Positions 1 to 58,549 of a stretch of DNA of 64,000 bases are shown here, piece by piece. The notes under the pieces were generated by a model, which was not told the DNA's origin, ran no database searches, and worked only from the letters and a program-made list of their open reading frames with translations. The position numbers and the translations under genes were made by a program. Numbering within the stretch: the stretch's first letter is position 1; every line of letters starts with the position of its first letter. This stretch comes from Anaeramoeba ignava BMAN. Lineage: Eukaryota > Protista > Anaeramoebae. Location: positions 1 through 64,000 of the forward strand of contig JAPDFW010000004.1 in NCBI GenBank assembly GCA_028826165.1, read 5' to 3'.

Positions 1-3000
1 AAATTTATCATCTTCTTCGTTTAATGAAATTAAATTTGTTATGATGGGATATAAACAAATTAAAATTTCTAATGGAATTTAATGATAATAAATAGTTTGG
101 AAATTAAATAGTGATTGTTGATGTTGTGAAATCAAATTTTCCTTTCATTTTCTTATTGAAAAGTAATGAAAATAATTTCTCATAAATGCCAAATATTTTG
201 CCTAAAATTTAAAATAATAGAACGTATCTTCTGTAATCAATATAACAACAATTTTCATTTAAATTGAAATGAATGTTTATTATTTTATTGGAAAGTTTCT
301 TCATAATTGGACATGGTACCATCTATGCCGTTTAGATTTAGAATTGAATTTAAGAATTAGATTTGTTCTTTTGGGTTTAATTGTGAATTTTGTGATCGTA
401 CAAATCAAAATATTATTTAACATTTTGAGAAAATAATTCTTTAATCAATTCACTTTATTATTTATTTAGTATCCGATAATACTAATTTGATATAGTTTCT
501 TCATTAAAATTTGTTAATTCAATTTAAAATTCATTTTAAATAATTCTAAATTCCATTTTATCATAAAGAGATTAATTGATACTTTTCTGTTTTCCTTCGC
601 ATCAATCCAAGAAATAAAACAATAATTCTTGTACTCTTTGATTAAAATTGTTCTGTAATTTTGAATTAATTTTCATAAATGATAAGAATTGAAAAGAATT
701 ATTCTAATTTTGAAAATTTTAAAATATGAATCAATTTCAATTAAATTAGATTAGAAACGATGAATGCAAATAAATTTTGTATTTCCATAGAAATATCTTC
801 TAAGTTTGAACCCATTTATCATTCAGTACGTTTAAAATTTTGTTGTTGTTAAAAGATAGTTTGATAAAATCTAACCAATATCTTTCCAATGAACTTCCTT
901 TATCTATCTTATTTCTTTTATCATTATTTGAATATTCAGAAAATGATATTTTGTTCTGAAATTGTTTGATGTATTATTGTTGGTGTGAATAAATTATTGA
1001 TATAAAGGTATCAAGTTCAATAATTTTATTTATTTTGATTTTCAATTTTCAATTTCAGGATCAAGGAATTTAAACTTATTAGTTTTCTTTAGTGGTCTGG
1101 ATCTAATAATTTTAAATTTTCATTTTGATTAGCATATTCTTGAAAACCAATTGTCAATAATAACAATTATCATTTGAATAATTTATCACTTCCAGAAGAG
1201 GAGAAATATATATTCTTCATTTTCATTTTGATTTTGATTTTGATTTTCATTTTGTTGAATTATATATAATTTCAGAATCAAAATAAATGATTTGTTTAAT
1301 CCCAATTGTTTCTCTTATGTGAAAAGTTGTTCATCACATTAATAATTCATTTTCAATAAAATTGTTGTTTGGATAAATTTTCACTTGTAAAATCATATTT
1401 CTTGAAATGGATATTTTCAAGTTTTCGATAGAAACTTCTTTCATGACTTACCTCTGGGAAGCATTAATTGTATCTAATTTTATGATTAGGAGGTATTCAA
1501 ATCATTTATAGAGGTAAAATGACATAACAATTCTCAATAAAATGGAACATCTTTCAAATTGAGAATAAATAGATAAAGATAATTATATATATGATTGGAA
1601 TTTTGTTCAATATTTGATAATTCCAATTTCATTTTGGAAAATGAAAGTATTATTGATTCCTATGATTGAAGATTTTATAGATAATTTCTATCACTCTGAT
1701 TATTGATATGCGGATAGGAATAATTTTGTATCTTGATTTATTTTCCATGTTTTCCAAACTTGTTGTAAGTATTATTGAATTTTGTTTTGTTTCCAATAAT
1801 TTCTTGATTAAATAATTCATCAAAACTTTTGAATGAAGAAGATAGTAAAATAGTAAAAGAAGGTTGATTATCAATAAATGTTTTCAAATGATTTAATAAA
1901 TGATTCGTAATCATTTTCTTTTATTGTAATAATACTAATCTAAATTTTGGGTTGATAAATACTTTCTTTCCTCATTAAAATTGAATACTAAAATTTCCCA
2001 TTTCTTAAAATCTTGATTAGTAAATTATTTAAAATGGATATATGATGATCACTAATAAACTCCTTCAGAAAGCACAATGACTAATAATACTTCTTTAATC
2101 TATGCTGCAGATTGTAGAAATATTTAATGATTTATCAAATAATAATAATAAATCTTTATCATAACAATTGAATCTGAAATATTTTGATAAATAATTGATT
2201 GAAATGTGAAATAATCAATTAATATGCTGAGATGTTTTCATAAATTCAAAATATGATTGATCTGATTCTTCTTGAAATGTGTAAAGATTTTCTGTTATTA
2301 TTCAATCAAATTTGAGGTATTTCAAAACCATCAATTTGATTTAAGTTTAAACTAACTCTTTCAATATTTTCCTCTAATCCAAAATTTCTATATTAAATAG
2401 AACATGTATGATTATTGAATAATTATGAGAAATAAAATCCAATGATATTCTTGAAAATAATAATCATAAATCCCATAAAGTTTGTAAGCTTTTCTTGAAT
2501 TTTGATTAAATTTGTTTGTTTTTGAGATTAAAATTTGATTTTTGACAAATTCCATTAAATATTTTAACAAACTATTTTGAAATAATTCTGGTGTGCTGCG
2601 GAAATAGATTTAAAATTTCTTTTGTTATTGATTCTAATTCAGTTTCATTGGAAGTTCATTATTTAAAATAATTCTGTTGATGTATTCATTTTTGATGATT
2701 TGAAAAGTTTAAAATTAATGAGGGTTTTGTTAAAATGATTCTAATTTTGTTAAATTGAATCTTTGAATTTTTCAAATTTCTAAATTAAGTCCGTGTTTTA
2801 TCTTTTAAATTTTGAATTCTTTTAAAATAATGGTAATTTCTTTTTGTTAATTTGAAATAATTTTTCCAGATTATTCAATTCATTATGAAGTTATTTGGTA
2901 AAATTTGAGAACATTCAATTTTTGTTAATTTGTAAATTTGGAAGATTTCGTTTTCATATTAAACTGTTTTAAAATGAATTTAAAAAGATGTTGTTTTAAG

Positions 3001-6000
3001 TTCTAAAAATAAAAATAAAAATTAATTTTTAGTATAACTCCTTATTTACCTGAATTTCCAATTATAATAAAGGTATTCAGTAAAAATGAAAATGAATATT
3101 AATAAAACTTTTTCTTTAAATTTAGTTTTGGCAACAATAATTCTCATATTTTTAGATTAAATTTTCTGTGAAATTTACATAAAAATTTGTTTCCAATATT
3201 CATCTTATGAAAATTTTTCGTTCTTTTCAATTTTGTTGCTTTTTGTTCATTACAATAAAAATTCTTTTCAACTTTTTCCTTCATTTCTGTACCCAAAACA
3301 TAAACAATAAATAGAATAATAAAATAGATGAAATGAAGGTTGATGTTTTCTTTTATCAATTTTTATTTACCCAAATATTAACAATTAAAAATTTTTGAAA
3401 AATTAAAAACATCTTGAAATGATTCAAAATATTCATTTTGAAAATATTATTGATTTTGATTTTGTTTCAATTTGATTTTTGAGTTAATTTTTGTAACAGG
3501 TAACTTTCGAAAATTGAGATTTGAATTAGAAAATTTTGGAGATTCTCTTTTTGTTGAAATAATTGATGAAGTATTGATAAAATATACTATTTCTTTTTGA
3601 ATTTTTACAATTTTTCCAAATCATAAATATCTTCAAATTGATTAAATGAATCAGAATTTAGAAAGCTAACCAATGAAATATTTCCGCATATTTTCCCACA
3701 ATTGATCTATTTAATAAAATTTCTTTGATTATTGTTATAGACTCTTTTGATCCTTTATTAATTCATGAAAATAAATATTAATCACGATGGTTATTATTTT
3801 GGTTTTTGAATTTTCTTGAATATTTTTCTTTTTGGTTTGAAAATTAACATTAGTAAAGTTGATCAAATATCTTCTTTAAATAACTCTTCTAAATATGCTT
3901 TTTCATATTCATTTCCTCCATTAATTACTGGTATTTTTCCCATATTTGAATTGAATATAAATCATTTTGAATAAATTTTTCTGATGTAAGAAAATTTCCT
4001 CTTTTTGATTTTCTTCATAATTTTGAATAATTTCATTTGTTATTTCAAATGATTTGGAATTAATGAATTAAAAATTTGTAAAAATATCTTTCATTTCAAT
4101 TTCAATTTTTGTTTCATTTTTAATTTTCATGGAAAATTATAATATTTTGATTATCAAAATTTAAACCATTTTGAAATAATTGTTTGATTTCGTAATTACT
4201 TATAAGAAATAATTTATATTCACCTTTTTGATTCTTGTTTTTGTTTCGAAAAAGAATTGGAAAAGATAAAATTTCTTTTTCCATTCAATTTTGTTTTTCA
4301 ATAATTTTGAAGATTCTTCCAAATTATTTGAATTTTCTAAATTTGAATTAAAATGAAAAAGGAGAAGCAAATTCAATATTAAAATTTAAACAATTTGTTA
4401 TAATTTGATTTAAAAAGAATAATATTTTTCTGAATCATTTTCAAAATTTTGAATAATTTCATCTTTTGTTAAATAACCATAATAAAATACGATAAATTTT
4501 CATTAAATATTGAAATTTGAAAAGTTCTAAAACTTATAAATTTGGTTTGTAAATTGTTTTCGAATTGATTTAATAATAAATTGAAATATTCTTTTGAATT
4601 TGGTTCTGATTTAAATTATTGATAATTTGTGTTAGTCCATTTGTATTTTATATTCTTTTAAATGATTTTGATTTGATTGAATTAAATTGGCAATTCTTTT
4701 TAATTCTGGATTTTCTTCTTTTCAATTTGAAAATTTAATATTGATAAGAAGAAAAGGAAAAATTATCAGAGTTCATTTTTACATTCTTTTTCTTTTAAAA
4801 TATTTTAATGGAGGAAAATTATTTAAACCATTTTCTGAACTTGATTTAATATAACTTGGAATTTCAAAACAATTTTAAAAGAATCATCAAAAATCCAAAT
4901 TAAATTATTTCTAATTTTCTTTCATATTCAAATGAATTCCACATTGATAATTCCCAAAGAAAATCCAAAGTTTCTAAAATAGGAGAGAAAGTTAAATCAA
5001 TATGAAGAAATTTAATTTTTGTTTTGAAATTAATTGAATTTTGTTTAAAATTTGATTAATTTCTTGAATAATTTCTGATTTTGTTCCTTTTTGAAATTTT
5101 GATATATAAATAAACTGATTTGTTTTCTTGATTTTTGATTTGATTATATTTTCATAAAAATATTTACGAATTTGATGAGTTTTTCCCATTCCTGGAATTT
5201 TAGAAGTAAATAATTTAATTCTTTAATTTTTGAAATGGTTTTTGAAAATTGATTTTAAATTTTCTTCTGGTATTGATTCAATTTTTCTGAAATCAAAAAT
5301 TAGGAAATGAGAAACAATATTTGAATTTGATAATTATCTTTTTGATAAAAGAAAATGATTAATGGAAAATGAGTTTCAAAAGAAATTTGTTGAATTTTCT
5401 GAATTAAAAATTTGAACAAAGTTGAGATAATTTTTGAACATGTAAAATTGAAAATAAATGTTTTTCGTGATTAATTTTTTGATTTTTTCTTGATTATAAA
5501 ATTTATAAATATTGAAGAAATTTTCAATATCAGATTGATTTGTATTTTTGAATTACAAATCATAACATTTTCTTTTAATGGTAAATGATTACAATATCCA
5601 AAATATAAACTTGTTAATATTTCATAAACTTGAATTTTTATCAATTTTGTAAAAGAAAATTTTTGAATTTTGAACTGATTTTTCATTTTTGAATAAATGA
5701 TTAAATTTCTTTTGTTATTTTTGGAATTTCCTTTTTAAATTGTATTAATCTTTTTGTTGAATTGAATTTTTAAATGAAATTAAATTGCTTAATTCTTCAA
5801 TAAAATTTTTAAAATTAGTTCGAAGGGATCAAATTCAGGAATAATATTAATTCTAAATTCTATTAAATCTTCATGAGTTAAATTTGGATTAAATAAACGA
5901 AGAAGAAGAAATAAATTATGGTTATTTTGAAGAGATTTTGAAAAACAGAGATTCATAACTTCAAAAAGTTGTTCTTGAGAAAAAAGAGAATAAACGAAAT

Positions 6001-23124: not shown

Positions 23125-26100
23125 ATGGATATTATTAAAGCTGCTCAAGATAATGATTTAAATGCAGTTAGGCAATGTCTTCTTGCTGGTGAATCACCAA
23201 ATAAAAAAGGAGTTTGTTTTGATTTTTGTTTTAATTTTTAATTTAATTTTAATAAACAAAACCAAAAAAAAAAAAGGGAGTAAATTGTTTTAAAAAATTC
23301 AAGAATAAGATTTTTGGATATTTTTATTAAAATTAATTAAATAATTAGTTTGTAAAATAATTTTCAATTTCAATTTTGTTTGTAATTTAAATTTAATTTT
23401 AATTTAATTTTTATCTTTTAAATTTTAAAGGGAAATTCACCTCTTTATATGGTTTTTTTTGGTTTTTCAACTCCAAATTATGAAGTTATTAAATTACTTA
23501 TTGAAAATGGAGCTGATGTTAATTCAAGAGTTGTAAATTATTAATCTAAAAACAAAAATAAAAACAAAAATAAAAACAAAATTAAAATTAAAATTAAAAT
23601 TAAAATTAAAATTAAAAAGATTGTAATTTGCTCTTTTTTTCCATTCCAAATTTTTTTTATTAAATTTAAAATGAAAATTTAAAATAGACTGTATTTTTTA
23701 ATTATAAATTTTTGATTATAAAATTAATTCATTTTGATTTATATTTTATGTAAAAACAAAAAAGTCTGTAAATATTTAATTTAATTTAATTTAATTTAAA
23801 TTTAATTTAATTTAAAAATAATTTTACATTTTAGGAGGTAAATTTATTTTAATTTTTGTTTTTTTCTTTTCAATAATAAATCTAATAAGAATTTATTTTT
23901 AGCGTGAAAGTGTTATTCAAATTGCTTTGAAAAAAAACAAAATTACTCCACAAATTCTCCAACTTTTAATTGATAATGGAGTTAAAATGAATCAAACTGA
24001 TGTAAATCATAAATATTTATTATATTATAAATTATAAATTATAAATATAAATCAAAATAACTAATTTAGGGTGTAAAATTAAAATTATCTAATTTAAAAT
24101 GAAAATAAAATTTTTACTCAATAATTTCTCATAAAAAATAATCAAAAAGCATGTAAAATTGTTTTTCAGAAATAAAATCTAAAATATAAAATATAAAATA
24201 TAAAATATAAAATATATTATTTATTTAGAAACAAACACCTTTAATAATGGCTTGTGCTAATAAATACTCTTCCAAAATTGTTGAAATGATTTTATCACAA
24301 AAAGATACTAAAGTTAATGCTTCTGATGTATATAAAAAATTGATTTAAAAAATAATAATCAAAAATTGATTTGAAAAATAATAAGGATGTAAATTTATTT
24401 GCTTATTTTTTTGTGGAAAAGAGTTTTTCAATTTTGTTATTTATTTTGAATATTAGAAAGTAAAAAATTTTGTTTTATGAATAAAAGATATTGTAATATT
24501 TATTATAATGTAAATATTAAGGGATGGGATGCTTTGCATTATGCTTGTCAATCACCAATTGATTTTACTGTTATTCAACTTTTAGTAAAAGCAGGTGCTA
24601 ATGTTAATGCTAGAACAGTAATTTTATTAATTTAAATCCAAATCCAAAATTAAATTTTTTATGAATTCATTATTTTTTTTAGAAAGTAAAATTTATATTT
24701 ATTTTTTCTTTAAAAAATTACTTTTTGATTTAATTTGATTATTAAAATAATAAAATTAAATAGGAAGTAAAAAATTGATTATTAAAAAAAATCCTTTATA
24801 AAAAAATTTGAAATAATTTTTTAAAATTTAATTTTAAATCCAAAAAAAAAAAAAAGAATTTAACTCCTCTTCATATTTATTCTTTTGCATCACAAAATTC
24901 AATAGAGGTTTTAAAATTCTTATTTATATCAGGAGCTAATCCAAATTATAATGCTGTAAAAACAAAATTAATAAAATAAAATGAAATAAAATTATTAATC
25001 AAAAAATATATATAAAAAAGACTGTAAAAAAATTTAAATTACTTTTCATTCCAAATTAAATTAAATCAAAAATTAAATAAAATTAAATTAAAATCAAATT
25101 AAATTAAATTAAATTTAAATTAAATTAAATTAAATTAAAATTAAATTAAAATAAATTAAATTAAATTAAATTAAATTAAATTAAAATCAAATTAAATTAA
25201 ACCAAATCAAATTAAATTAAAATCAAAATTAAATCAAATCAAATTAAATTAAATTAAATTAAATTAAATCAAAATCAAATTAAATTAAAATTAGGAAGTA
25301 ATTTTTTGTTTAATTTTCCTAAATTAATTTAAATTTCTAAATTATTTTTAATTAGGGAACACCTTTTCATTTTGCAATTAAAAATAAACTTGATCCTGAA
25401 AAAATTCAAGAATTTCTTAGAGCTGGAGCTAATTCAGATATTTTAGATGTTAATCAAAAAAAAAAACAAACAATTATTAAATTATTAAATTTAAATTTTA
25501 TTCCAAAAAAAAAAATAGAAAGTAAAAATAATCAAAAAGAAAAGAAAAAATATTATTTAAAAAAGTCAATTCTCAAAAAATCAATTATCAAAAAAAAAAA
25601 TAGAAAGTATTTCTTTTTCAAAAAAAAATAAAAACAATTTCAAAATCAAATAAAATAAATATATTGAAATTTTTATTTGAAAAATTAGAAATCAAGTGTT
25701 TTACATTGTGCTTGTGATTTAGGATCTTCAGAAATTATTATTAAAATGCTTCTTGCAGGAGGAGCAAATCCAAATCTTGTTAATGTACCAAAGAAAAAAT
25801 ATTTAGAAAGAAAGAAGATTTAAAATAAATAAATAAAAAGGGAGTAAACAATTTTATTTTTCATTTTAAAAATCATTCAAATAAATATTTTTTATTTTAA
25901 ATTTAGAAAGTAATAAATCAATAAATCAATTAATCAATTAAATCAATTAAATCAATTAATAAATCAATAAATAATCAAAGAAAAAAACACCACTTCAAAT
26001 TTGTAAAGATACAGGAAGAGATGATTTAGTTCAAATTTTTCAAGATTTTGCAAGTATTTTTTTTTTAAAAAATAAAAAAAAAGATTTTAAATTGTAAATA

Positions 26101-27648
26101 AAATTTTAATTTAAAAACAAAATAAAAGTAAATCCAAATGATACAAAAATGAAATATTTTTCAGCAGTTAAGATGGTAATTTTTAAATCCAATTTTTAAA
26201 TCAATTTTTAAATCAATTTTTAAATCAATTTTTAAATCAATTTTAAATCCAATTTTATTCAATTTTTAAATCAATTTTTAAATCAATTTTTAAATCCAAT
26301 TTTTAAATCAATTTTTAATCCAAATTAAAATCAATTTTTAATCCAATTTTTAAATCAATTTTTAAATCAAATTTTTAAATTCAATTTTTAAATTCAATTT
26401 AAATCAATTTTTTAATCCAATTTTTTAAATTCAATTTAAATTCAAATTAAATTCAATTTTTTAATCAATTTTTAATCAATTTTTAATCCAATTTTTAATC
26501 CAATTTTTAAATCCAATTTTTAAATTAATTTTAAATCAAATTTTTAATCAATTTTAAATCCAATTTTTAATCCAATTTTAAATCCAATTTTTAATCCAAT
26601 TTTTAAATCAATTTTAAATCAATTTTAAATCAATTTTTTAATCCAATTTTTAATCCAATTTTAAATCAATTTTTAATCCAATTTTTTAAATCAATTTTTA
26701 AATCAATTTTTAAATCCAATTTTAAATCAATTTTTAAATCAATTTTAATCCAATTTTTAAATCAATTTTTAAATCAATTTTTAAATCAATTTTTAATCAA
26801 TTTTAAATCAAATTTTTAATCAATTTTTAAATCAATTTTTAAATTAATTTTTAAATCAATTTTAATCCAATTTTTAAATCAATTTTTAAATCCAATTTTA
26901 AATCAAATTTTAAATCCAATTTTTAAATCCAATTTTTAATCCAATTTTTAATCCAATTTTTAAATCCAATTTTTAATCCAATTTTTAAATCAATTTTTAA
27001 ATCAATTTTTAAATCAATTTTTAATCCAATTTTTAATCCAATTTTTAATCCAATTTTTAATCCAATTTTTAAATCAATTTTTAAATCAATTTTAAATCAT
27101 TTTTAAATCAATTTTTAATTCAATTTTAATCCAAATTTTTAATTCAATTTTTTAAATCAATTTTTTAATCAATTTTAAATCCAATTTTTAATTCAATTTT
27201 AAATCAATTTAAATCAATTTTTAAATCAATTTTAAATCCAATTTTAAATCAATTTTTAAATCAGTATTTTGAACAACAAGAAAAGAATAAATCATTTTCA
27301 GATCACAGTCAACAAGAATCAGAACAAGAAAGTGAAAAATCAAAAAGAGATTCTTTATTTGATTTACTTTCAATGGCTAAAAAGGCAAAATTACAAGAAA
27401 ATTCAAATCAAACAAATGAAAAACCTCGTCTTACAGGATTTTTTAGTCAAGTTAAAGAAAATTTACAAAAAAAAGAAGAATCAAAATTTAATTCATTTAA
27501 ATCTGAATTGGATGATTTCAAAAGTGAAATCAATATTAAAATTCAAAGTCTTGTTGAAGAAAATGAAAGATTAAGAAAAGATCTTACAGATCTTCAAAAA
27601 AGAATGAAAAGAATTGAAGAAGCAAATCCATCTTTAATTTTGAATTAA
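23125..27648 (+). CDS. Ankyrin-repeat protein (9 repeats plus C-terminal coiled coil), ~442 aa, 29 predicted exons of which 18 are 3-nt microexons
   Basis: Large exons 23125-23211, 23431-23532, 23903-24001, 24229-24327, 24522-24617, 24857-24955, 25356-25448, 25689-25784, 25981-26053, 26129-26175, 27265-27648. Repeat exons read GNSPLY..ENGADVN, KQTPLIMA, GWDALHYA..KAGANVN, NLTPLH, GTPFHFA, KSSVLHCA, KKTPLQ. All introns are GT-AG and the last exon joins ORF 27373-27648 in frame. Confidence 0.9.
23277..23351 (+). other. Microexon cluster 1: GGA (Gly, 23277-23279) and TTT (Phe, 23349-23351)
   Basis: AAAAG|GGA|GTAAAT and ATTAG|TTT|GTAAAA. Gives NKKG-G-F-GNSPLY, matching ankyrin consensus NxxD-x-x-GxTPLH spacing. 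Confidence 0.85.
23620..23837 (+). other. Microexon cluster 2: ATT (23620-23622), ACT (23688-23690), TCT (23765-23767), GAG (23835-23837)
   Basis: AAG|ATT|GTAATT, TAG|ACT|GTATTT, AAG|TCT|GTAAAT, TAG|GAG|GTAAAT, with flanking introns of 65-87 nt. Gives NSRV-I-T-S-E-RESVIQ. Confidence 0.8.
24070..24152 (+). other. Microexon cluster 3: GGT (Gly, 24070-24072) and CAT (His, 24150-24152)
   Basis: TAG|GGT|GTAAAA and AAG|CAT|GTAAAA. Gives NQTD-G-H-KQTPLI. Confidence 0.85.
24386..24459 (+). other. Microexon cluster 4: GAT (Asp, 24386-24388) and AAA (Lys, 24457-24459)
   Basis: AAG|GAT|GTAAAT and TAG|AAA|GTAAAA. Gives NASD-D-K-GWDALH, a textbook ankyrin DxxG turn. Confidence 0.87.
24683..24766 (+). 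other. Microexon cluster 5: AAA (Lys, 24683-24685) and GAA (Glu, 24764-24766)
   Basis: TAG|AAA|GTAAAA and TAG|GAA|GTAAAA. Gives NART-K-E-NLTPLH. Confidence 0.85.
25021..25297 (+). other. Microexon cluster 6: ACT (Thr, 25021-25023) and GAA (Glu, 25295-25297)
   Basis: AAG|ACT|GTAAAA and TAG|GAA|GTAATT. The intervening intron is expanded to 271 nt by (AAATT)n. Gives NYNA-T-E-GTPFH, one residue shorter than consensus. Confidence 0.82.
25519..25606 (+). other. Microexon cluster 7: AAA (25519-25521) and AAA (25604-25606)
   Basis: TAG|AAA|GTAAAA and TAG|AAA|GTATTT. Gives DILD-K-K-KSSVLH. Confidence 0.82.
25841..25909 (+). other. Microexon cluster 8: GGA (Gly, 25841-25843) and AAA (Lys, 25907-25909)
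   Basis: AAG|GGA|GTAAAC and TAG|AAA|GTAATA. Gives NLVN-G-K-KKTPLQ. Confidence 0.85.
26176..27264 (+). repeat. Intron made of degenerate (TTTTTAAATCAA / TTTTAATCCAA)n
   Basis: GTAATT...TCAG intron of 1089 nt, essentially G-free inside on the sense strand. Confidence 0.85.
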
Positions 27649-29379: not shown

Positions 29380-31148
29380 TTAAATGAAATAAGATTCAAC
29401 TTCATCAACAACCCATGAACTCTCAGAACCAGCTAAATAACTCATAGCTTCATTTGATCTATAAGTAATTCCATTAGGTAGATTATATCTAGAACCAAAT
29501 TGTGATAAACCATGTTTTAAATCAGAACCTAAAAGAAAATCACCATTACCAAAAAATGGACCATGATTTAAATAAGAATTAATTGCATATTGAGGTTCTT
29601 TAATTGTAAACTTTGCAGGTATTCTATCCCCTTTATCATTTCTTAATGAAAAAATAAATGCATTTGAGTCATTAATGTTTCCTTTATCTCCATTAAATCC
29701 AACTTTAGTAAAACCTCCAAAAATAAAATTTTGTTTTGTTTTGATAATAACTAATGTTTTTCCTTTCCCATCAACTGCTTTATGCCAATTTTTAGAATTA
29801 AATCCATCTCTTTTTGCTGAAAATCCTTTTTTCATTTTAGAAAAAAAATCATTATCATTTATCCATTCTTGTAATTTCTTAGCATATTCAATATCTTGAA
29901 CAATTCTTGAATCTGAAAAAATCTTTGCCACTTTTAATTTATATTTTTTTCTGTCTAGTTTTGATTTCGGGATTTCGTTTTCTTTTCCTTTTTCCTTAAT
30001 TTGTGATTCCAATTTTTTTTATTTTTCTCTCTTTTATTTATTCAAAACTTCTTTCTTCCATTTCTCTTTCAAATAGGATTTTATTTCCTCTTTTTCAATT
30101 TCTTTCTCTTGTTTTTTCCACTTTAATTTTCTTTTTTTTTCTTTTGATTCTTTTTTCTCTTGTTTTTAATTTTCTTATCTTTTCTTCAATTTCAATTTTC
30201 ATTTGTTGATTTTTTTTATTTTATTTTCAATTTCAATTTTCTTTTCTTTGTTTTTCCAATTTCTTTTTGATTATCTTGAATAACTTTGTTTTGAATATCA
30301 ACTAAAAAGAATTTGGAAGAAAAAAATCAGAATTGTTTTAATTTATCAAAATCTTGTTTTGAAATTGAATCTTTATCAAATAATGAAAAAGAATGAAATA
30401 ATCTTTTCTTTTTCAATTCCCTTTTCTTTTTCTTTTTCTTTTTCTTTCTTTCCTTTTAATCTTTCATTTCTTTTTCAATCCAATTATTTAAAAATTGAAA
30501 AAAATCAAATTGAAAAATTTCTTTTTTTTCTTGTTTAAATTGAATAAATTTGATAATTTCTTCTTTAGTTAAATTGAATAAATTCTCATTATTTTGAATT
30601 TGGGAAAAATTTTGATTTATTAATTCAAAACATTTTATTTCAATTTCATTTGAATTTAAATTTCGATTTTGGAATAAAAATTGGAAAAAATTTGAATAAT
30701 TAATTGAATTTGAAATTTTTTTTTGAATAATTTCTTTCAATAAATTTAATTTAAAATAAATTGAAATTTCTAATAATTGAAAAAGATTTTCTTGATTCTC
30801 AAAAGAAATATTTCCATAATAAATATAACTCAAAATTGATTCCATTTCTTTTTTATTAAATTGATTTAAAAAAATAGAATTAAGATGATTTTTCTCTTTT
30901 AAAAACTTATCAAAAAAAGGAGATCTTGAAGATAAAATTGATTTATGAACTTTAATTTCAAAAGGATTTGATTTATTCTCAACAAAAATTGAAAAATCTT
31001 TAAATGAATTTCCATTTAAAAGGTTTGAATAATCTTTAATTAAATTTTTTGTTACTTTTTTTTCTAAATTTTTCATTTCATTTTCATTTTGATTTTGATT
31101 TTCATTTTCAATTTGGTTTGCATTTTGATTATTATTATTCTTATCCAT
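29380..31148 (-). CDS. BTB-coiled-coil-TLDc protein, copy 1 (frameshifted in the A-rich linker ~30010-30455)
   Basis: 5' ORF 30456-31148 has BTB (FKDFSIFV...VHKSILSSRSPFF...YIYYG). 3' ORF 29380-30012 has TLDc (SAKRDGF...GKTLVIIKT...FIFGGFT...AFIFSL...GPFFG...VDEVESY). Paralog of 44346-46046. Confidence 0.8.
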
Positions 31149-32426: not shown

Positions 32427-35400
32427 ATGGTCAAATTAAAAATCAAAATCAAAATTGGAAATCAAAAAATCAAAATCAAAACAAAAAATGAAAATAATGA
32501 AAATCAAAATCAAAATCAAAATCAAAATGAAAATGAAAATCAAAATCAAAATCAAAATCAAAATCAAAATCAAAAAAATCAAAATCAAAATCAAAATCAA
32601 AATGAAAATCAAAAATGAAAAAAATCAAAATCAAAAATCAAAATGAAAATGAAAATGAAAATCAAAATGAAAATGAAAATCAAAATGAAAAAAATGAAAA
32701 TCAAAATCAAAAATCAAAATCAAAATCAAAATCAAAAAAAATCAAAATCAAAATCAAAAAAAATGAAAATCAAAATCAAAATGAAAATCAAAATCAAAAT
32801 GAAAATCAAAAATAAAAAAATCAAAATCAAAAAAATCAAAATGAAAATCAAAATCAAAATCAAAATCAAAATGAAAATCAAAATCAAAATCAAAATGAAA
32901 ATCAAAATCAAAATGAAAATCCAAAATCAAAAATCAAAATCAAAATCAAAATGAAAATCAAAATCAAAATCAAAATGAAAATGAAAATGAAAATGAAAAT
33001 CAAAATGAAAATGAAAATCAAAATGAAAATGAAAATCAAAATCAAAATCAAAATCAAAATCAAAATCAAAATCAAAATCAAAATCAAAATCAAAATCAAA
33101 ATCAAAATCAAAATCAAAATGAAAATGAAAATCAAAATGTAATCAAAAATCAAAATCAAAATCAAAATCAAAATGAAAAAAAATGAAAATCAAAATCAAA
33201 ATCAAAATCAAAATGAAAATCAAAATCAAAATCAAAATCAAAATCAAAATCAAAATGAAAATGAAAATCAAAATCAAAATCAAAATCAAAATCCAAAATC
33301 AAAATCAAAATCAAAATGATAATCAAAATCAAAATCAAAATCAAAATGAAAATGAAAATGAAAATCAAAATCAAAATCAAAATGAAAATGAAAATCAAAA
33401 TCAAAATCAAAATCAAAATCAAAATCAAAATGAAAATGAAAATGAAAATCAAAATCAAAATCAAAATCAAAATGAAATGAAATGAAAATGAAAATCAAAA
33501 ATCAAAATCAAAATCAAAATCAAAATCAAAATCAAAATGAAAATGAAAATCAAAATCAAAATCAAAATCAAAATCAAAATGAAAATCAAAATCAAAATCA
33601 AAATCAAAATCAAAATCAAAATCAAAATCAAAATCAAAATCAAAATCAAAATGAAAATCAAAATGAAATCAAAATCAAAATCAAAATCAAAATCAAAATC
33701 AAAATCAAAATCAAAATCAAAATGAAAATGAAAATGAAAATCAAAATCAAAATCAAAATGAAAATCAAAATCAAAATGAAAATCAAAATGAAAATCAAAA
33801 TCAAAATGAAAATGAAAATCAAAATCAAAATCAAAATCAAAATGAAAATGAAAATGAAAATGAAAATGAAAATCAAAATCAAAATGAGTTAAAAAATGAA
33901 AATGAAGAAATTCAAACCAAAATTAAAAAATTGAATAAATTCTTAATAAAACAAGCAAATAAACAAATTGGTTTAATGTTTGGAAATAAAAAAACTTCAG
34001 ATTTTCAAATTTATTGTGGAAAAGATAAAATTTTAATTCCTTGTCATAGATCAATTTTAGAAGCTCGTTCAAAATATTTTATGATAAATAGAAAAGAAAA
34101 CAAATTTAATTCAATTTATTTTAATAATTTTGATTCTGAAATTGTTAAACCAATTATTAAATTTTTTTATAATGGAAAATTTAAATTTGATAAACAAAAA
34201 TTTGATGAATATTTTAAATTTGCAAATGAAATTAAATCGAAAGAAATTCAAATCAAAATTGAACTTGAAATTCAATCAATTTTTAATATTGAAAATATTT
34301 TAGAAATTTATTTCAAAACTCAAAAAATTAATTCAAAAAATCTTTTACAAAATTGTGAAAAATTTATTTTCCAAAATATTCAATTTATTATTTCAAATCC
34401 AAATTTTGGAAAATATCTAAATCAAAATCAAATAACTAATTTTATTGGATTGATTTCTTTAAATCAAAATCTTCCAAATCAATTTCAAATTATTGAACAA
34501 ATCAAAACAAAAATGGAATCAAAATCATCAAAAAAAATTGATAAAATTAATTAATTTTGAAATAAATCATCAAAAAGAAAATAATGAAATTGAAATTGAA
34601 AAAATTGAAAAAATGGAAAATGAAAATTATTTTTCAACTTTATTAAATCAAATTTCACAAACAAAATCAATTAATCAAATTCAAATTCAACAAATCAAAA
34701 ATAAACCAATTTCTCAAACTAAAAATATGATAATTTTATTAAATTCAAATATTCAAGAATTTGTTAAAAAAGAATTTCAACATTTACAAAGAAAAAAGTT
34801 TAAATTAAAATCTTTATGAGCAAAAAAAGAATAATCCAAAAAGAAAAAGAAGAATTAGAAAAAATCAAAAAAGAAATTGAAGAAATTCAAAAAGAATATG
34901 AAAAATGGGAAAAAGAAACTGAAGAAAAATTTCAACAATTTATTCAAAATGAAAATGAAAAAATGAAAAAAGAATATTTAGAAGAATTTAAGAAAATGAT
35001 TAATAATTTGAAAGAATTATTTAAACAAAATAGAAAAAAAGATTTAGAAGAATTTCAAAATGAATTCAAAAACAGAAAGAATACAAATTTGGAAGAAATT
35101 GATAAAAAATATCAAGAATTAATAAATTTCCCTAAATTAAAAATAGAAGAAGATTTAAAATTATTTAAAGAAAGAATTAAACAATTTAAAAATGAATTTG
35201 AAAAAAGAAAAAAAGAAACATTTAATCAATTTATTCAAGAAAATAATGAAAATCATGAAAATAATGAAAATAATGAAAATAATGAAAATAATGAAAATAA
35301 TGAAAATAATCAAATTCAAAATAATCAAAATGAAAATCAAAATCAAAATCAAAATCAAAATAAAAATAAAAATCAAAATCAAAATCAAATTCAAAATCAA

Positions 35401-36499
35401 AATGAAATTGAAGAAATGAAAAATAGAATTAAATTAAAAAAAAATAAATATTTGGAAAAAATTGAAAAAAAAATCCAAGAAATGAAAATTCAAATTGAAA
35501 AATTAAACGAAATTGAAATTGAAAAAATAATTCAAGAATTTAAAAATGAAATTGAATTAAAAAAAATTGAATATTTTAAACAAATTGATGAAGAAATCAA
35601 AAATATTCAAAAAAAAATTGATGAAGAAAAATCAAAAATAAAAATTCTTCAATCACCAGAAAAAGCAATAATTTTTTTACAAGAACTTTCAAATTCAATT
35701 CAACAACATGATAAGAGTAAATCAAAAACAAAATTAAAAAAAGAAAATTTAATCAAATCATTTTATCTTATTTAATATTTCATTTCCAAAACAAAATGAA
35801 AATAAACATAAATAATTGGAGTTCATGTTCATTTGATTCTTGAATGTATGAATAAGTTTCCTAATAATGAAATTATTCAACAAAATGGGTGTTTTACTTT
35901 AGCAATTATTGCTTATGGTGATGGTAAATAAATTCTTATTTAAATTTATTTCAAAAATAAAAATAAAACTAAAAATAAAAATAGAAATAGAAAACAAAAT
36001 TGAGATCAGGAATTTAAAAGGAATTGAAACAATTATTAAAGCAATGAATAATTTCCCAAATATCCAAATTATTCAAGAGAATGGATGTTTAACTTTAGGA
36101 ATTATTGCTTATGATGATGGTAAATAAATTCTTAATTAAATTTATTTCAAAACTAAAAATTAAACTGAAACTAAAAATAAAAATAGAAAATCAAAATGAG
36201 ATTAAAAAATTAAATGGAATTGAACCAATTATTAATGCAATGAATAATTTCCCAAATATTGAAGATATTCAAATATATGGATGTTTAACTTTAGGAATTA
36301 TTGCTTATGATGATGGTAAATAAATTCTTAATTAAAATTTTCTTCAATTACTTAATCCAAAATAAAAATAAAAATAGAAAACAAAATTGAAATAAGGAAA
36401 TTAAAAGGAATTAAAGTTATTATTAATGCAATGAATAATTTCCCAAATATTGAAGATATTCAACAATTTGGAAAATTGGCACTTGAAAAATTCAAATGA
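32427..36499 (+). CDS. N/Q/E-rich leader + BTB + coiled coil + 4 armadillo-like repeats (copy A, several frameshifts)
   Basis: BTB SDFQIYCG...CHRSILEARSKYF...FFYNG. ARM-like exons 35991-36119 and 36187-36315 (129 nt each) and 36378-36499, reading LKGIETIIKAMNNFPNIQIIQENGCLTLGIIA, with phase-1 GTAAAT..ATAG introns. Confidence 0.75.
32450..33900 (+). repeat. (AATCAA/AATGAA)n hexamer microsatellite encoding the Asn-Gln/Asn-Glu leader
   Basis: About 1.4 kb of AAAATC/AAAATG hexamers. The paralog has the same tract in frame at 41570-42265. Confidence 0.9.
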
Positions 36500-53500: not shown

Positions 53501-56500
53501 CTAAAATGAAAATTATTTATAAATAAGTAGAATTTTTTCGATTTATCTGATATTAATGCTTTAATAAATTGTGCGACACCAATTTCTAAATCTACACCAG
53601 ATCAAAAACAAGTAATTTTTTAATTTCAAAAAAATTCAAATCAAAAAATTTAAATCAAAAAATTCAAATCAAAAAAATTCAAATCAAAAAAATTTAAATC
53701 AAAAAAATTTAAATCAAATTCAAATCAAAAAATTTAAATCAAAAAATTTAAATCAAAAAATTTAAATCAAAAAATTTAAATCAAATTTAAATCAAATCAA
53801 ATTCAAATCAAAAAAATTTAAATCAAAAAAATTTAAATCAAAAAAAAGGAAATCCTTGAATCAAATCAAACAGTAGACCGTTTATCAAAACTTTATAATA
53901 TAATTATGGAGGATAATTCACTTATAGATGCTAAAAATGAACTAGATAAAAAAGCAAGTGATGAATCAGCAAAAAATATGAAAAGATATCGAATTGAAAA
54001 TGAACTGAGATTTTTAACATCTTTATCAGAAAGTATTTCGGTTTCAGATTCACCATACATAAAGAAACTTCACGACAAAGTGATACCAGGAAAAGTGCTT
54101 GAAATTATCAAATCAGAAATACAAAAACTTCAACAAACGGATAAAAGATCAATTGAATATGGAGTAACAAAAGAGTATCTTGAATGGCTAAGTATATTGC
54201 CATGGGGAGTCAACGATCCCATTCATAAAGATATCAATCAAGCAAAAAAAATACTAGATGAGGATCATTTTGGACTTCAAGATATAAAAGAACGAATTCT
54301 TGAATTTATTGCAGTGGAAAATTTACTTGAACATGCAGGCGGCAAAATAATTTGCTTTGTAGGTCCGCCTGGTGTTGGGAAATGCTTGGGATTTAATACT
54401 CAAGTTATGCTTGCAAATGGAAAATGCGCAGCTGTTCAAGATATCAAACCTGGTCATGTTTTATTAGGCGATGATTCAAATCATCGAAATGTTTTGTCAA
54501 TCACTAAAGGATTTGGAAAGTTGTTTAATATCATAGATAAAAATTCACGCCAATCGTTTGTTGTTAATGAGGAGCATATTCTTTGTTTGAAATTTTGTGG
54601 GAATGATTATTCGAAAATTAAATGGAATAAGAAACTCAATTGTTATCAAATCAAATTCCTTGAAAATCATCAATTCAAAACTTTTTTCATTACTGATTTG
54701 TATCGAAAAGGAAAATTCAGCAAAAAAAAAGTTAAATTGTTTGCTAAGAAAATTCGCAAGTCTTTAAATCTTACAAAATTCGGTGATATTGTTGAAATTT
54801 CTGTTAAAGATTATATGAAAAAATCCAATGAATGGAAAAAATTATATTGTGGTTATCGAACATTTGTTGAATTCAAAGAGAAACAAACCGATCAAGATCC
54901 GTTTGTTTTGGGAAGAAATTCTGCGAATCATGAATTACAAATTGCGATGTCATTAGAAAATGGAAAGAAAATGAAACCAAATACAGATACAGATACAAAA
55001 AAAGAAAAGAAGAGAATAATCCCTGAAAATATCAAGTTCAATTCCAAAAGAATTCGTCAAGAGTATTTGGATGGATTTCTTGAATCTGCAGCAAAATTAT
55101 CCAAAAAAAGGAATCAATGCGAAGTTTTATTATCAAATTCAAATTTTGTTAATGATTTTGAATATTTATGTAGATCACTTGGAATTCATTTTGTGAAAAG
55201 TGGGAATTCAATTATAAAATTTAGGTTGTATAATTTTGATAGAAAAACGAAGAGAATTAATTATAAAAAACAAAATCAGAAAAAAGAAAAAGATTTAATG
55301 TTTCCAATTTCTGTTTGTTATTCTGGAGAAGGAAATTATTATGGATTTGAGTTGGATGGAAATGGGAGGTTTTTATTAGGAGATTTTACTGTAACACATA
55401 ATTCATCAATTGCACAAAGTATTGCAAGAGCATTAGAAAGAAAATTTTATAGATTTTCAGGTTAAAAATTTCAAAAATTATTGAAAAAAATTATTGAAAA
55501 AAATTATTGAAAAAAAAACTTTTTTTTTAATTTATTAGTTGGAGGTATGAGAGATGTTGGAGAGATTAAAGGTCATCGTAGAACTTATGTTGGTGCTTTA
55601 CCTGGAAAAATGATACAAAGTCTTAAGATAACTCAAACAAGTAATCCTGTGATATTAATTGATGGTAAATTGGAAAAATATTAAAAAATATTAAAAAATT
55701 AAAATATTAAAATATTATTTAAAAAATATTCAAAAATATTCAAAAAATATTCAAAAAATATTCAAATAATATTAAATAATATTCAAAAATATTCAATAAT
55801 ATTAAATAATATTCAATAATATTTAATAATATTTAATAATATTCAATAATATTCAATTAATATTTAATAATATTCAATTAATATTTAATAATATTCAATA
55901 ATATTCAAATAATATTCAATAATATTTAATAATATTCAATAATATTCAAATAATATTTTAATAATATTTAATAATAATTTAATAATATATTCAATAATAT
56001 TCAATAATATTCAATAATATTCAATAATATTCAATAATATTCAATAATATTTAATAATATTCAATAATATTAAATAATATTTAATAATATTTAATAATAT
56101 TAAATAATATTCAAAAATATTCAATAATATTCAATAATATTCAATAATATTTAATAATATTCAATAATATTCAATAATATTCAATAATATTCAATAATAT
56201 TTAATAATATTCAATAATATTTAATAATATTTAATAATATTTAATAATATTTAGTAATATTTAATAATATTTAATAATATTAAATAATATTTAATAATAT
56301 TCAAAAATATTCAATTAATATTCAATAATATTCAATAATATTCAATAATATTCAAAAATATTCAAAAATATTCAATAATATTCAATAATATTCAATAATA
56401 TTCAATAATATTTAATAATATTCAATAATATTTAATAATATTCAATAATATTCAATAATTAAAAATATTTAAATAATATTCAATAATATTCAATAATATT

Positions 56501-58549
56501 CAATAATATTTAATAATATTTAATAATATTCAATAATTAAAAAATATTTAAATAATATTCAATAATATTCAATAATATTCAATAATATTCAATAATATTT
56601 AATAATATTTAATAATATTATTTAATAATATTCAATAATATTCAATAATATTCAATAATATTCAAATAATATTCAATAATATTCAATAATATTCAAATAA
56701 TATTCAAATAATATTCAATAATATTCAATAATATTTAATAATATTCAAATAATATTCAATAATATTCAATAATATTCAAAAATATTCAAAAATATTCAAA
56801 TAATATTCAATATTCAATAATATTCAATAATATTCAATAATATTCAATAATATTTAATAATATTCAATAATATTCAATAATATTCAATAATATTCAATAA
56901 TATTTAATAATATTTAATGATATTCAATAATATTTAATAATATTTAAAAATATTTAAAAATATTTAATAATATTCAATAATATTAAAATAATATTTAAAA
57001 ATATTTAAATAATAAATTAGAAATTGATAAAATTGGACAAAGTTTCAAAGGAGATCCTGCAAGTGCGCTTCTTGAGGTTTTAGATCCAGAACAAAACTTT
57101 GAATTCATTGATCACTATTTAGATGTACCATTTGATCTATCCAAAATAACATTTATCTTAACAGCCAATGATGCAACACAAATTCCAAGAACTTTATTAG
57201 ATCGATTAGAAGTTATTCAACTCTCAGGATATGTATTAAAGGAAAAATTAATGATAGCAAAAAATCATTTTCTTCAAAAAATCAAAAAAGAAACAGGTTT
57301 AAGTAAATGTGATATTCAAATAACAGATGAAGCTATTATTAAAATAATTCGCGATTATTGTCGCGAACCTGGCGTTAGAAATTTATCTAATCAACTCGAG
57401 AAAATTTATCGCAAAATTGCTTTTAAATATTGCAATTTGAATTCAAATCAAAGAGATTCTTTTCATGTTTTTATTGATAAAAAGGATATTGTTGATTATT
57501 TGGGAACTCGTAAATATTCAAAGGATAGGATTTTTGAAAAAACTATTCCTGGTGTTGCAACCGGTCTTGCTTGGACTCCTTTTGGTGGTGTTGTTATTTA
57601 TATTGAAACAATTGTATCTGATGTTGCAAATCTTGAAAGAAAAAACAAGAATCAAAATTCAAATCAAAATTCAAATCCAAAAAAATTAGTTTATAATTCA
57701 AATCCAAAAAAATTAGTTTATAATTCAAATCCAAAAAAATTAGTTTATAATTCAAATCAAGATTCAATTAAAAACTTAATTCAAGATTCAATTCAAAATT
57801 TAATTCAAGATTCAATCGAAAATTTAAATCAAAATTTAATTGAAAATTTAAATCAAAATTCAAATGAAAATTTAAATCAAAATTTAAATCAAAATTCAAA
57901 TAAAAATTCAAATGGAAATTCAAATCAAAATTTAAATCAAAATTCAAATCAAAATTTAAATGGAAATTCAAATGAAAATTTAAATCAAAATTTAAAAGAA
58001 AATTCAAATCAAAATTCAAATGGAAATTCAAATGAAAATTCAAATGAAAATTCAAATAAATATGAAATAAGAGAAGCTGGAGGAACATTATTCACAACAG
58101 GAAATATTGGGAATGTTATGCAAGAAAGCACACAAATAGCATATAGTTTTGCCAAAAGATTTCTTGAGAAACACGATAAAAACAATAAATTTTTTTTCAA
58201 CACGATTCACATGCACATTCCCAAAGGGGCTATACCTAAAGATGGACCATCAGCTGGAGTAACGATGGTCACAGCATTATTATCTCTTGCTTTAAATGAG
58301 CCAGTCAAACAAGAAACTGCAATGACTGGTGAAATTACTTTGAATGGAAAAGTTTTGGCTGTTGGTGGTATTAAAGAAAAGGTTATTGGTGCTAGTATTT
58401 CTGGTATAAAAAATATCATTTTACCTGTGGAAAATAAAAGAGATTGGGATGAAATTGACCCTTTTATTAGAACTGATTTGAAAGTTATTTTTGTTCAAGA
58501 TTATCAAGAAATTTTTGATGAAGTTTTTAGTTTTGAAAAGAAGAATTAA
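50536..58549 (+). CDS. LONP1: Organellar (mitochondrion-related organelle) LonA protease precursor containing an intein; exons 50536-50776, 52106-52677, 53353-53451, 53531-53611, 53849-55460, 55539-55664, 57021-58549
   Basis: Basic, Ser/Leu-rich presequence-like N-terminus, [37 protein letters not shown], Walker [20 protein letters not shown], Walker B ILIDEIDK, catalytic DGPSAG and GGIKEK. Confidence 0.92.
50777..52105 (+). repeat. Lon intron 1, mostly (TAAATATTAAAA)n
   Basis: GT..AG intron of 1329 nt made almost entirely of an ~12-bp A/T unit. Confidence 0.85.
54383..55402 (+). mobile_element. Intein (340 aa) with a degenerate LAGLIDADG-type endonuclease region, inserted in the Lon Walker A motif
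   Basis: Block [14 protein letters not shown] directly after GPPGVGK, block [12 protein letters not shown], blocks [24 protein letters not shown] followed by +1 Ser. Excision restores [18 protein letters not shown]. Confidence 0.95.
55665..57020 (+). repeat. Lon intron, mostly (AATAATATTC)n
   Basis: GT..AG intron of 1356 nt splitting the Walker B Glu codon (G|AA), built from a 10-bp unit. Confidence 0.85.

Follow-up and report, generated by a model that had tools for sequence, protein, structure and literature searches.

At the recognition surface of Dscam1, tandemly duplicated intron-exon units form clusters, from each of which one whole-domain exon is chosen. Runs of short exons characterise the Schistosoma MEG genes, whose 10-20 exons per gene measure 6-81 nt (mostly 15) and are separated by introns of 0.1-5 kb, and whose products are secreted proteins carrying a signal peptide (PMC10526429). 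Diversification of the Tetrahymena LRR genes has been attributed to unequal crossing-over (PMC6564038). Exons as small as 1-3 nt are spliced in vivo, are overlooked by standard aligners and are often misannotated (PMC8831610). As for the ankyrin repeat, positions 2 and 3 of the DxxGxTPLH motif are among those randomised in ankyrin libraries (PMC4308713). Here we describe an ankyrin gene of Anaeramoeba ignava BMAN, a genome with 32,108 introns (mode 76 nt, mean 300 nt, 8% G+C; PMC11550330), in which the codons for these two positions very probably constitute exons of their own.

The window, that is, the whole stretch of 64,000 nucleotides that was analysed, covers the beginning of contig C6 in the A. 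ignava BMAN assembly (42,843,398 bases, 147 contigs). With the micro-exons counted, its ankyrin gene comprises 29 exons encoding 442 amino acids and no internal stop (Table 1), and the micro-exons, every one of 3 nt, supply 18 of the 442 codons. The 26 introns of the micro-exon region are all GT-AG and measure 56-90 nt, except for a single one of 271 nt, comparable to the normal intron length of the genome. They are ∼92% A+T with G nearly absent; 20 of the 26 start with GTAA, 18 of the 26 lack an internal AG, and a search for a conserved branch-point motif in them found none. Pfam and homology searches were run with individual exons as queries, joined readings being assembled in local scripts only; in this exon-by-exon search six of the seven internal large exons matched PF00023 on their own, four of them above the gathering score. 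The original prediction had bounded the system at 23125-26053; the micro-exons do fall inside, but the gene continues through a linker exon and a last exon. The intron between these two (26176-27264) is 1.09 kb long, 10 times the usual length, and consists of a degenerate short A+T repeat.

Table 1. Predicted exons of the ankyrin gene (window positions) and predicted micro-exon chains on metagenome contigs
Feature	Position	Strand	Evidence
Exon 1, N-terminal capping repeat, 29 aa	23125..23211	+	sequence parse
3-nt exon GGA (Gly), junction 1	23277..23279	+	AG-NNN-GT, dynamic-programming parse
3-nt exon TTT (Phe), junction 1	23349..23351	+	AG-NNN-GT, dynamic-programming parse
Large ankyrin exon, 34 aa	23431..23532	+	Pfam Ank model 2-31 of 33
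3-nt exon ATT (Ile), junction 2 (four-exon)	23620..23622	+	AG-NNN-GT, parse
3-nt exon ACT (Thr), junction 2	23688..23690	+	AG-NNN-GT, parse
3-nt exon TCT (Ser), junction 2	23765..23767	+	AG-NNN-GT, parse
3-nt exon GAG (Glu), junction 2	23835..23837	+	AG-NNN-GT, parse
Large ankyrin exon, 33 aa, divergent	23903..24001	+	no Pfam match alone
3-nt exon GGT (Gly), junction 3	24070..24072	+	AG-NNN-GT, parse
3-nt exon CAT (His), junction 3	24150..24152	+	AG-NNN-GT, parse
Large ankyrin exon, 33 aa	24229..24327	+	Pfam Ank 3-32
3-nt exon GAT (Asp), junction 4	24386..24388	+	AG-NNN-GT, parse
3-nt exon AAA (Lys), junction 4	24457..24459	+	AG-NNN-GT, parse
Large ankyrin exon, 32 aa	24522..24617	+	Pfam Ank 2-32 of 33 over whole exon
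3-nt exon AAA (Lys), junction 5	24683..24685	+	AG-NNN-GT, parse
3-nt exon GAA (Glu), junction 5	24764..24766	+	AG-NNN-GT, parse
Large ankyrin exon, 33 aa	24857..24955	+	Pfam Ank 3-30
3-nt exon ACT (Thr), junction 6, then 271-nt intron	25021..25023	+	AG-NNN-GT
3-nt exon GAA (Glu), junction 6	25295..25297	+	AG-NNN-GT, parse
Large ankyrin exon, 31 aa	25356..25448	+	Pfam Ank 4-32 (weak)
3-nt exon AAA (Lys), junction 7	25519..25521	+	AG-NNN-GT, parse
3-nt exon AAA (Lys), junction 7	25604..25606	+	AG-NNN-GT, parse
Large ankyrin exon, 32 aa	25689..25784	+	Pfam Ank 4-32
3-nt exon GGA (Gly), junction 8	25841..25843	+	AG-NNN-GT, parse
3-nt exon AAA (Lys), junction 8	25907..25909	+	AG-NNN-GT, parse
Exon of C-terminal capping repeat, phase-1 end	25981..26053	+	sequence parse
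Linker exon, 47 nt	26129..26175	+	also in GenBank model
Last exon, 127 aa, low complexity and coiled coil, stop codon	27265..27648	+	exon search, model
Kinase-gene micro-exon chain	L117:1760-3165		metagenome contig
Kinase-gene micro-exon chain	L054:680-1024		metagenome contig
Kinase-gene micro-exon chain	L114:1573-2622		metagenome contig

Exon 1 opens with an ankyrin cap and, judged by eye, has no hydrophobic leader; the C-terminal end of the protein is a coiled coil, and fusions with BTB are numerous among its relatives. The role in microbe or symbiont recognition that had been proposed for this gene thus finds no support. Elsewhere in the window a Lon protease gene (53906-58549, + strand) carries an apparent intein within its Walker A region; Anaeramoeba is known for abundant inteins (PMC10710043).

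The motif AG-NNN-GT occurs 18 times in the 2,085 nt that make up the eight apparent long introns, against a mean of 0.96 and a maximum of 7 in 5,000 dinucleotide shuffles, and other AG-to-GT spacings (1, 2 and 4-12 nt) occur 0-2 times each in the same introns. A dynamic-programming parse, fed with composition, splice dinucleotides and an open frame under parameters that we set, recovers exactly the same 18 segments. Positions and codons agree with the original prediction, all segments being in phase 0 and none a stop, and its judgement that chance is an unlikely source is upheld.

Of 355 natural ankyrin junctions, 302 have a distance of 7 residues between the conserved Asn and TPLH, three have 6 and one has 5. 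Including two codons gives the canonical 7-residue spacing at six of the eight junctions, and skipping them leaves 5 (or 4) at all, which bears out both the restored spacing and the turn two residues short that had been claimed. Junction 2, with four codons, has an excess of two, and junction 6 is still one residue short. A two-codon form comes out top in a local profile at all eight junctions, clearly at six and marginally at junction 2. Set against Pfam and the 355 natural junctions, every large exon is short of just the two 'xx' residues of DxxG, and the single-codon pairs correspond to positions 2 and 3 of DxxGxTPLH. The idea that binding residues are packaged as single exons holds for these two hairpin positions but not for the other variable ones (five or six in total), which lie in the large exons. 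Reading exon status from genomic sequence together with protein constraints, we consider it highly probable that the 18 single-codon exons are spliced into the mRNA.

The 424-aa protein in GenBank, KAJ5080670.1, matches exactly the model in which all 18 are skipped, just as gene predictors had been expected to do, and a search for a transcript-derived protein copy matched only this skip model. This omission would favour a view in which each cluster is one long intron and AG-NNN-GT is a satellite, a relic of recursive splicing or a splicing signal; however, two residues would then be missing at every ankyrin junction, and exons of 1-3 nt are in any case missed by standard aligners (PMC8831610). 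In the contigs of run X1 the share of words present was 0.20; because this fits the 0.207 expected of spliced exons only for the ankyrin gene, X1 may be an RNA run.

Another possibility is that subsets of exons are combined by alternative splicing into an isoform repertoire per gene, as in Dscam or the MEG genes; 2^18 theoretical patterns had been suggested for this gene. Every cassette is symmetric, so the frame would survive any exon subset, and the four codons at junction 2, where there is room for two, speak in the same direction. At the ankyrin pairs, however, the number of codons is nearly always two across five genes and the shorter spacers are rare naturally, for which reasons both hairpin codons look required; the proposed repertoire is not supported at the pairs, and we regard combinatorial splicing as their main function as quite unlikely.

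The same layout appears to be family-wide and to extend to hundreds of genes. An AG-NNN-GT was present 57-87 nt upstream in 141 of the 217 TPLH-type exons preceded by an acceptor, and a hand tally of the first 100 of the 141 segments contained no stop (p ∼3e-6). Four further ankyrin genes on contig C1 repeat the 96+3+3 arrangement, apart from rare junctions that have one codon, one 6-nt exon or none. In one gene (L037, minus strand, ∼5084-5089 of the reverse complement) both hairpin codons share a single 6-nt exon, and other junctions of L037 have one codon or zero; these are possible intermediates of gain or loss. Across genes the large exons measure 93-105 nt, keep phase 0 and start at GxTPLH. 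Aromatic residues occupy 28% of second hairpin codons in the same tally of 100 versus 12% in other ankyrins, the Phe/Tyr part of which may be partly due to A+T bias, and Trp (TGG) accounts for 6% of hairpin codons versus 1% in other ankyrins in a genome of 80% A+T. Ankyrin introns are 21% mismatched to one another, not copies, so that a duplication origin of the units is not visible here. Numerous ankyrin genes of A. ignava are intronless, and two A. flamelloides homologs have no micro-exons, one of them having introns at the xx|G position only.

Genome wide, a strict A+T-flanked pattern, which recovers only ∼10% of ankyrin cases, returned 1088 sites at 3 nt versus 44 at 2 nt, 57 at 4 nt and 64 at 6 nt, in line with the enrichment by spacing that had been anticipated. 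Scaling for this low recovery, a rough extrapolation, the genome probably holds 2,000-4,000 single-codon exons. Among the 1088 sites TAA occurs 4 times, TAG never and TGA 7 times; six of the seven TGA sites have a phase-1 TLDc flank, where TGA is not read as a stop. The word 'microexon' is absent from the A. ignava genome paper and its supplements (PMC11550330). As the original prediction had supposed, the arrangement seems undescribed: we found no account of single-codon exons or of arrayed or paired 3-nt exons in the literature searched, which excludes most subscription journals.

The device extends beyond ankyrins, to TLDc loops and to tails, in arrays of 7-34. Four tandem BTB-BACK-TLDc genes and a fifth gene contain arrays of 7-30 segments; all 78 segments measured exactly 3 nt, with introns of 54-290 nt between them. 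The arrays are in phase 1 and lie inside the GPxFG-to-DIxL loop; with all segments included they contain no stops, and Tyr, Phe, Trp and Asp are frequent in them. Such BTB-BACK-TLDc genes were located on contig C1 (L033-L036; 942 kb and 1058-1073 kb), and similar flanks are also present on C13, C21, C24, C35, C46, C137 and others; on C21 and C35 the unit recurs regularly every 179-180 nt. Genome wide, some 15 segments of four bases and several of two have such flanks, perhaps through assembly indels or as compensating pairs. Another BTB-type gene on C1 (L031:800-4630, minus strand; 409-413 kb) ends in a phase-0 array of at least 34 segments that forms its C-terminal tail; divergence is 3% among the introns and 52-75% among the exon bases, and the array includes some broken units and a few GC donors. 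A relative of this gene has a six-codon linker ahead of its ankyrin exons (L041:4398-4924). Many TLDc genes of A. ignava are intronless. The window itself contains a large inverted duplication of BTB-TLDc and BTB-coiled-coil genes (29380-31148, -/44346-46046, +; 33931-35775, +/39106-42270, -), whose TLDc copies have no array and loops of 2 and 7 residues.

The wobble position of the codon is the base that varies least in arrays of each phase, falling third in phase 0, second in phase 1 and first in phase 2, and at 280 phase-1 sites the middle base is T in 85%. Across arrays the introns differ by 3-10% and the two coding bases by 53-81%. Strict avoidance of every stop-forming start by phase-1 cassettes was considered and rejected, as 21 of the 280 begin with AG or AA. 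The long-intron view gains something from the TLDc genes, where skipping all segments gives a plausible one-residue loop; against it stand the strict 3-nt length, the avoidance of stops in the inherited frame and a wobble position that moves with phase, and we judge it highly improbable. For the combinatorial view, full inclusion would yield TLDc loops of up to 31 aa compared with 1-12 aa in 94 paralog models. Nevertheless, every array tested is free of stops at full inclusion, and the starts that form a stop after T are not strictly avoided. As the main function overall we hold combinatorial splicing to be rather unlikely; in the long arrays it is a serious possibility, at somewhat less than an even chance.

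Chains of this kind were also found outside Anaeramoeba. Metagenomes were scanned for the paired 3-nt pattern and 80 of the matches listed were screened; 77 were set aside as satellite-like or chance. The three remaining contigs (14-18% G+C) carry kinase genes whose 3' part consists of 12-47 3-nt exons with introns of 19-35 nt (Table 1). In L117, 47 exons come after a kinase with a B-box: 45 of them measure 3 nt, one 1 nt and one 6 nt. Introns of 21-30 nt separate them, and there is no stop in the upstream kinase frame; the chain reads C-T-K-C near its start and C-P-K-C-G near its end, a zinc-ribbon-like arrangement, and its middle is a homogenised array of 31-nt units, some with degenerate splice sites. 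L054 is orthologous to the first part of this chain, and the 35 segments of L114 are stop-free solely in the phase-2 frame passed on from the kinase. L117 terminates in an incomplete repeat of the CCCCAAT type, the one that forms rumen-ciliate telomeres (10.1101/2022.01.05.474053). By these sequence features the three contigs are probably from rumen ciliates, in which single-codon exon chains probably arose separately, by convergence. The several degenerate splice sites of the ciliate array would suit alternative splicing. It is conceivable, if doubtful, that combinatorial splicing acts on the long arrays, on the four-exon ankyrin junction and on the zinc-ribbon-like domain of the ciliate, having evolved independently in a metamonad and a ciliate. 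If so, one gene could encode a repertoire of receptors or adaptors at the RNA level, with single-residue resolution, and diversity would be generated in a new way.

We lean, with modest confidence, towards real and mostly constitutive single-codon exons that are diversified by duplication and exchange at the DNA level. The spliceosome of A. ignava would define introns, not exons, excising the short introns in succession, each from its GT as far as the AG that follows; exons as small as one codon would then be possible. An ankyrin repeat would be built from one large exon of ∼96 nt plus two single-codon exons giving the 'xx' of the D-x-x-G hairpin, and the spacing suggests that both codons enter most transcripts, yielding repeats of normal length. 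An intron plus one codon would act as a DNA-level cassette, subject to unequal crossing-over or conversion within low-complexity introns, and its gain, loss or swap would change single residues without a frameshift. Selection on the ankyrin fold would fix the number of cassettes at two, and tolerant sites (the TLDc loop, linkers, the ciliate zinc-ribbon-like domain) could accumulate arrays of tens, in which introns are homogenised and codons vary. The sequence of the arrays shows that intron-plus-codon units were duplicated in tandem; their exchange we infer. The outcome would be binding surfaces that evolve codon by codon, presumably under diversifying selection, in large gene families that include many BTB adaptors.

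Micro-exon codons were compared among paralogs, as had been called for. Between two sister TLDc genes, 1.8% of the intron bases differ but 5 of 48 micro-exon bases do, all non-synonymous and with Tyr/Trp swaps going both ways, a comparison involving only three changed units. The micro-exon codons of one ankyrin duplicate pair (C28 and C72) are identical, which counts against the reading we favour, as does the fact that no single-codon swap between ankyrin paralogs was seen. One might instead regard the exons as real and constitutive but as neutral by-products, intron-plus-codon duplications that accumulate where tolerated and have no diversifying role. The arrays are plainly tandem duplications, variable loops tolerate any sequence, and the micro-exon layout is dispensable, since many ankyrin and TLDc genes of the same genome are intronless. 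Yet non-synonymous bases are far more variable than the flanking introns and the wobble base, Trp is in excess at hairpin codons despite the A+T richness, and similar arrays exist in an unrelated lineage; a purely neutral origin is, in our estimate, unlikely.

If real, constitutive single-codon exons are the right reading, the minimum practical exon size would be a routine design and not an oddity, and paratope residues would sit between recombinogenic introns, a route of diversification undescribed in the literature searched. The hidden exons estimated here, to be set against the annotated introns, would therefore leave a few hundred protein models without binding residues. Chains of 30-47 single-codon exons would allow direct tests of intron definition and of the order and fidelity of splicing, and the apparent rumen-type ciliate case suggests that such exons are hidden in further A+T-rich, short-intron protist genomes.

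The closest described systems share some of these features and differ in others. Dscam1 likewise has intron-exon units that were duplicated in tandem and serve a recognition surface, but the unit in A. ignava would be one codon, and ankyrin pairs appear to need both codons for canonical spacing. Schistosoma MEG genes resemble the present case in that very short exons, symmetric for the most part, follow one another in runs, escape automatic annotation and are tied to protein variation (PMC10526429). However, most MEG coding sequence lies in exons of ∼6-36 nt, whereas A. ignava exons are exactly 3 nt, stand at fixed loop positions of folded domains and make up few codons of an ankyrin gene that has short introns in place of introns of 0.1-5 kb and an ankyrin cap, with no secretion leader by eye, in exon 1. 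The 90-bp exon arrays of Tetrahymena LRR genes share a fixed intron phase and a large protist family (PMC6564038); there the unit is a whole 30-aa repeat in one exon, whereas an A. ignava ankyrin repeat would span three exons, its variable residues split off as single codons. The packaged residues coincide with two randomised binding positions of the DARPin/ANK-N5C libraries (PMC4308713), but those libraries are synthetic and their randomised positions 5, 10, 13 and 33 fall within A. ignava large exons. Finally, plant microexons of 1-15 nt and animal neural microexons of 3-27 nt (PMC8831610; SRRM3/4 programme) are likewise tiny and commonly misannotated; those are mostly single and often regulated, whereas the predicted exons of A. 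ignava and the ciliate come in pairs or in chains of up to 47, probably on the order of thousands per genome.
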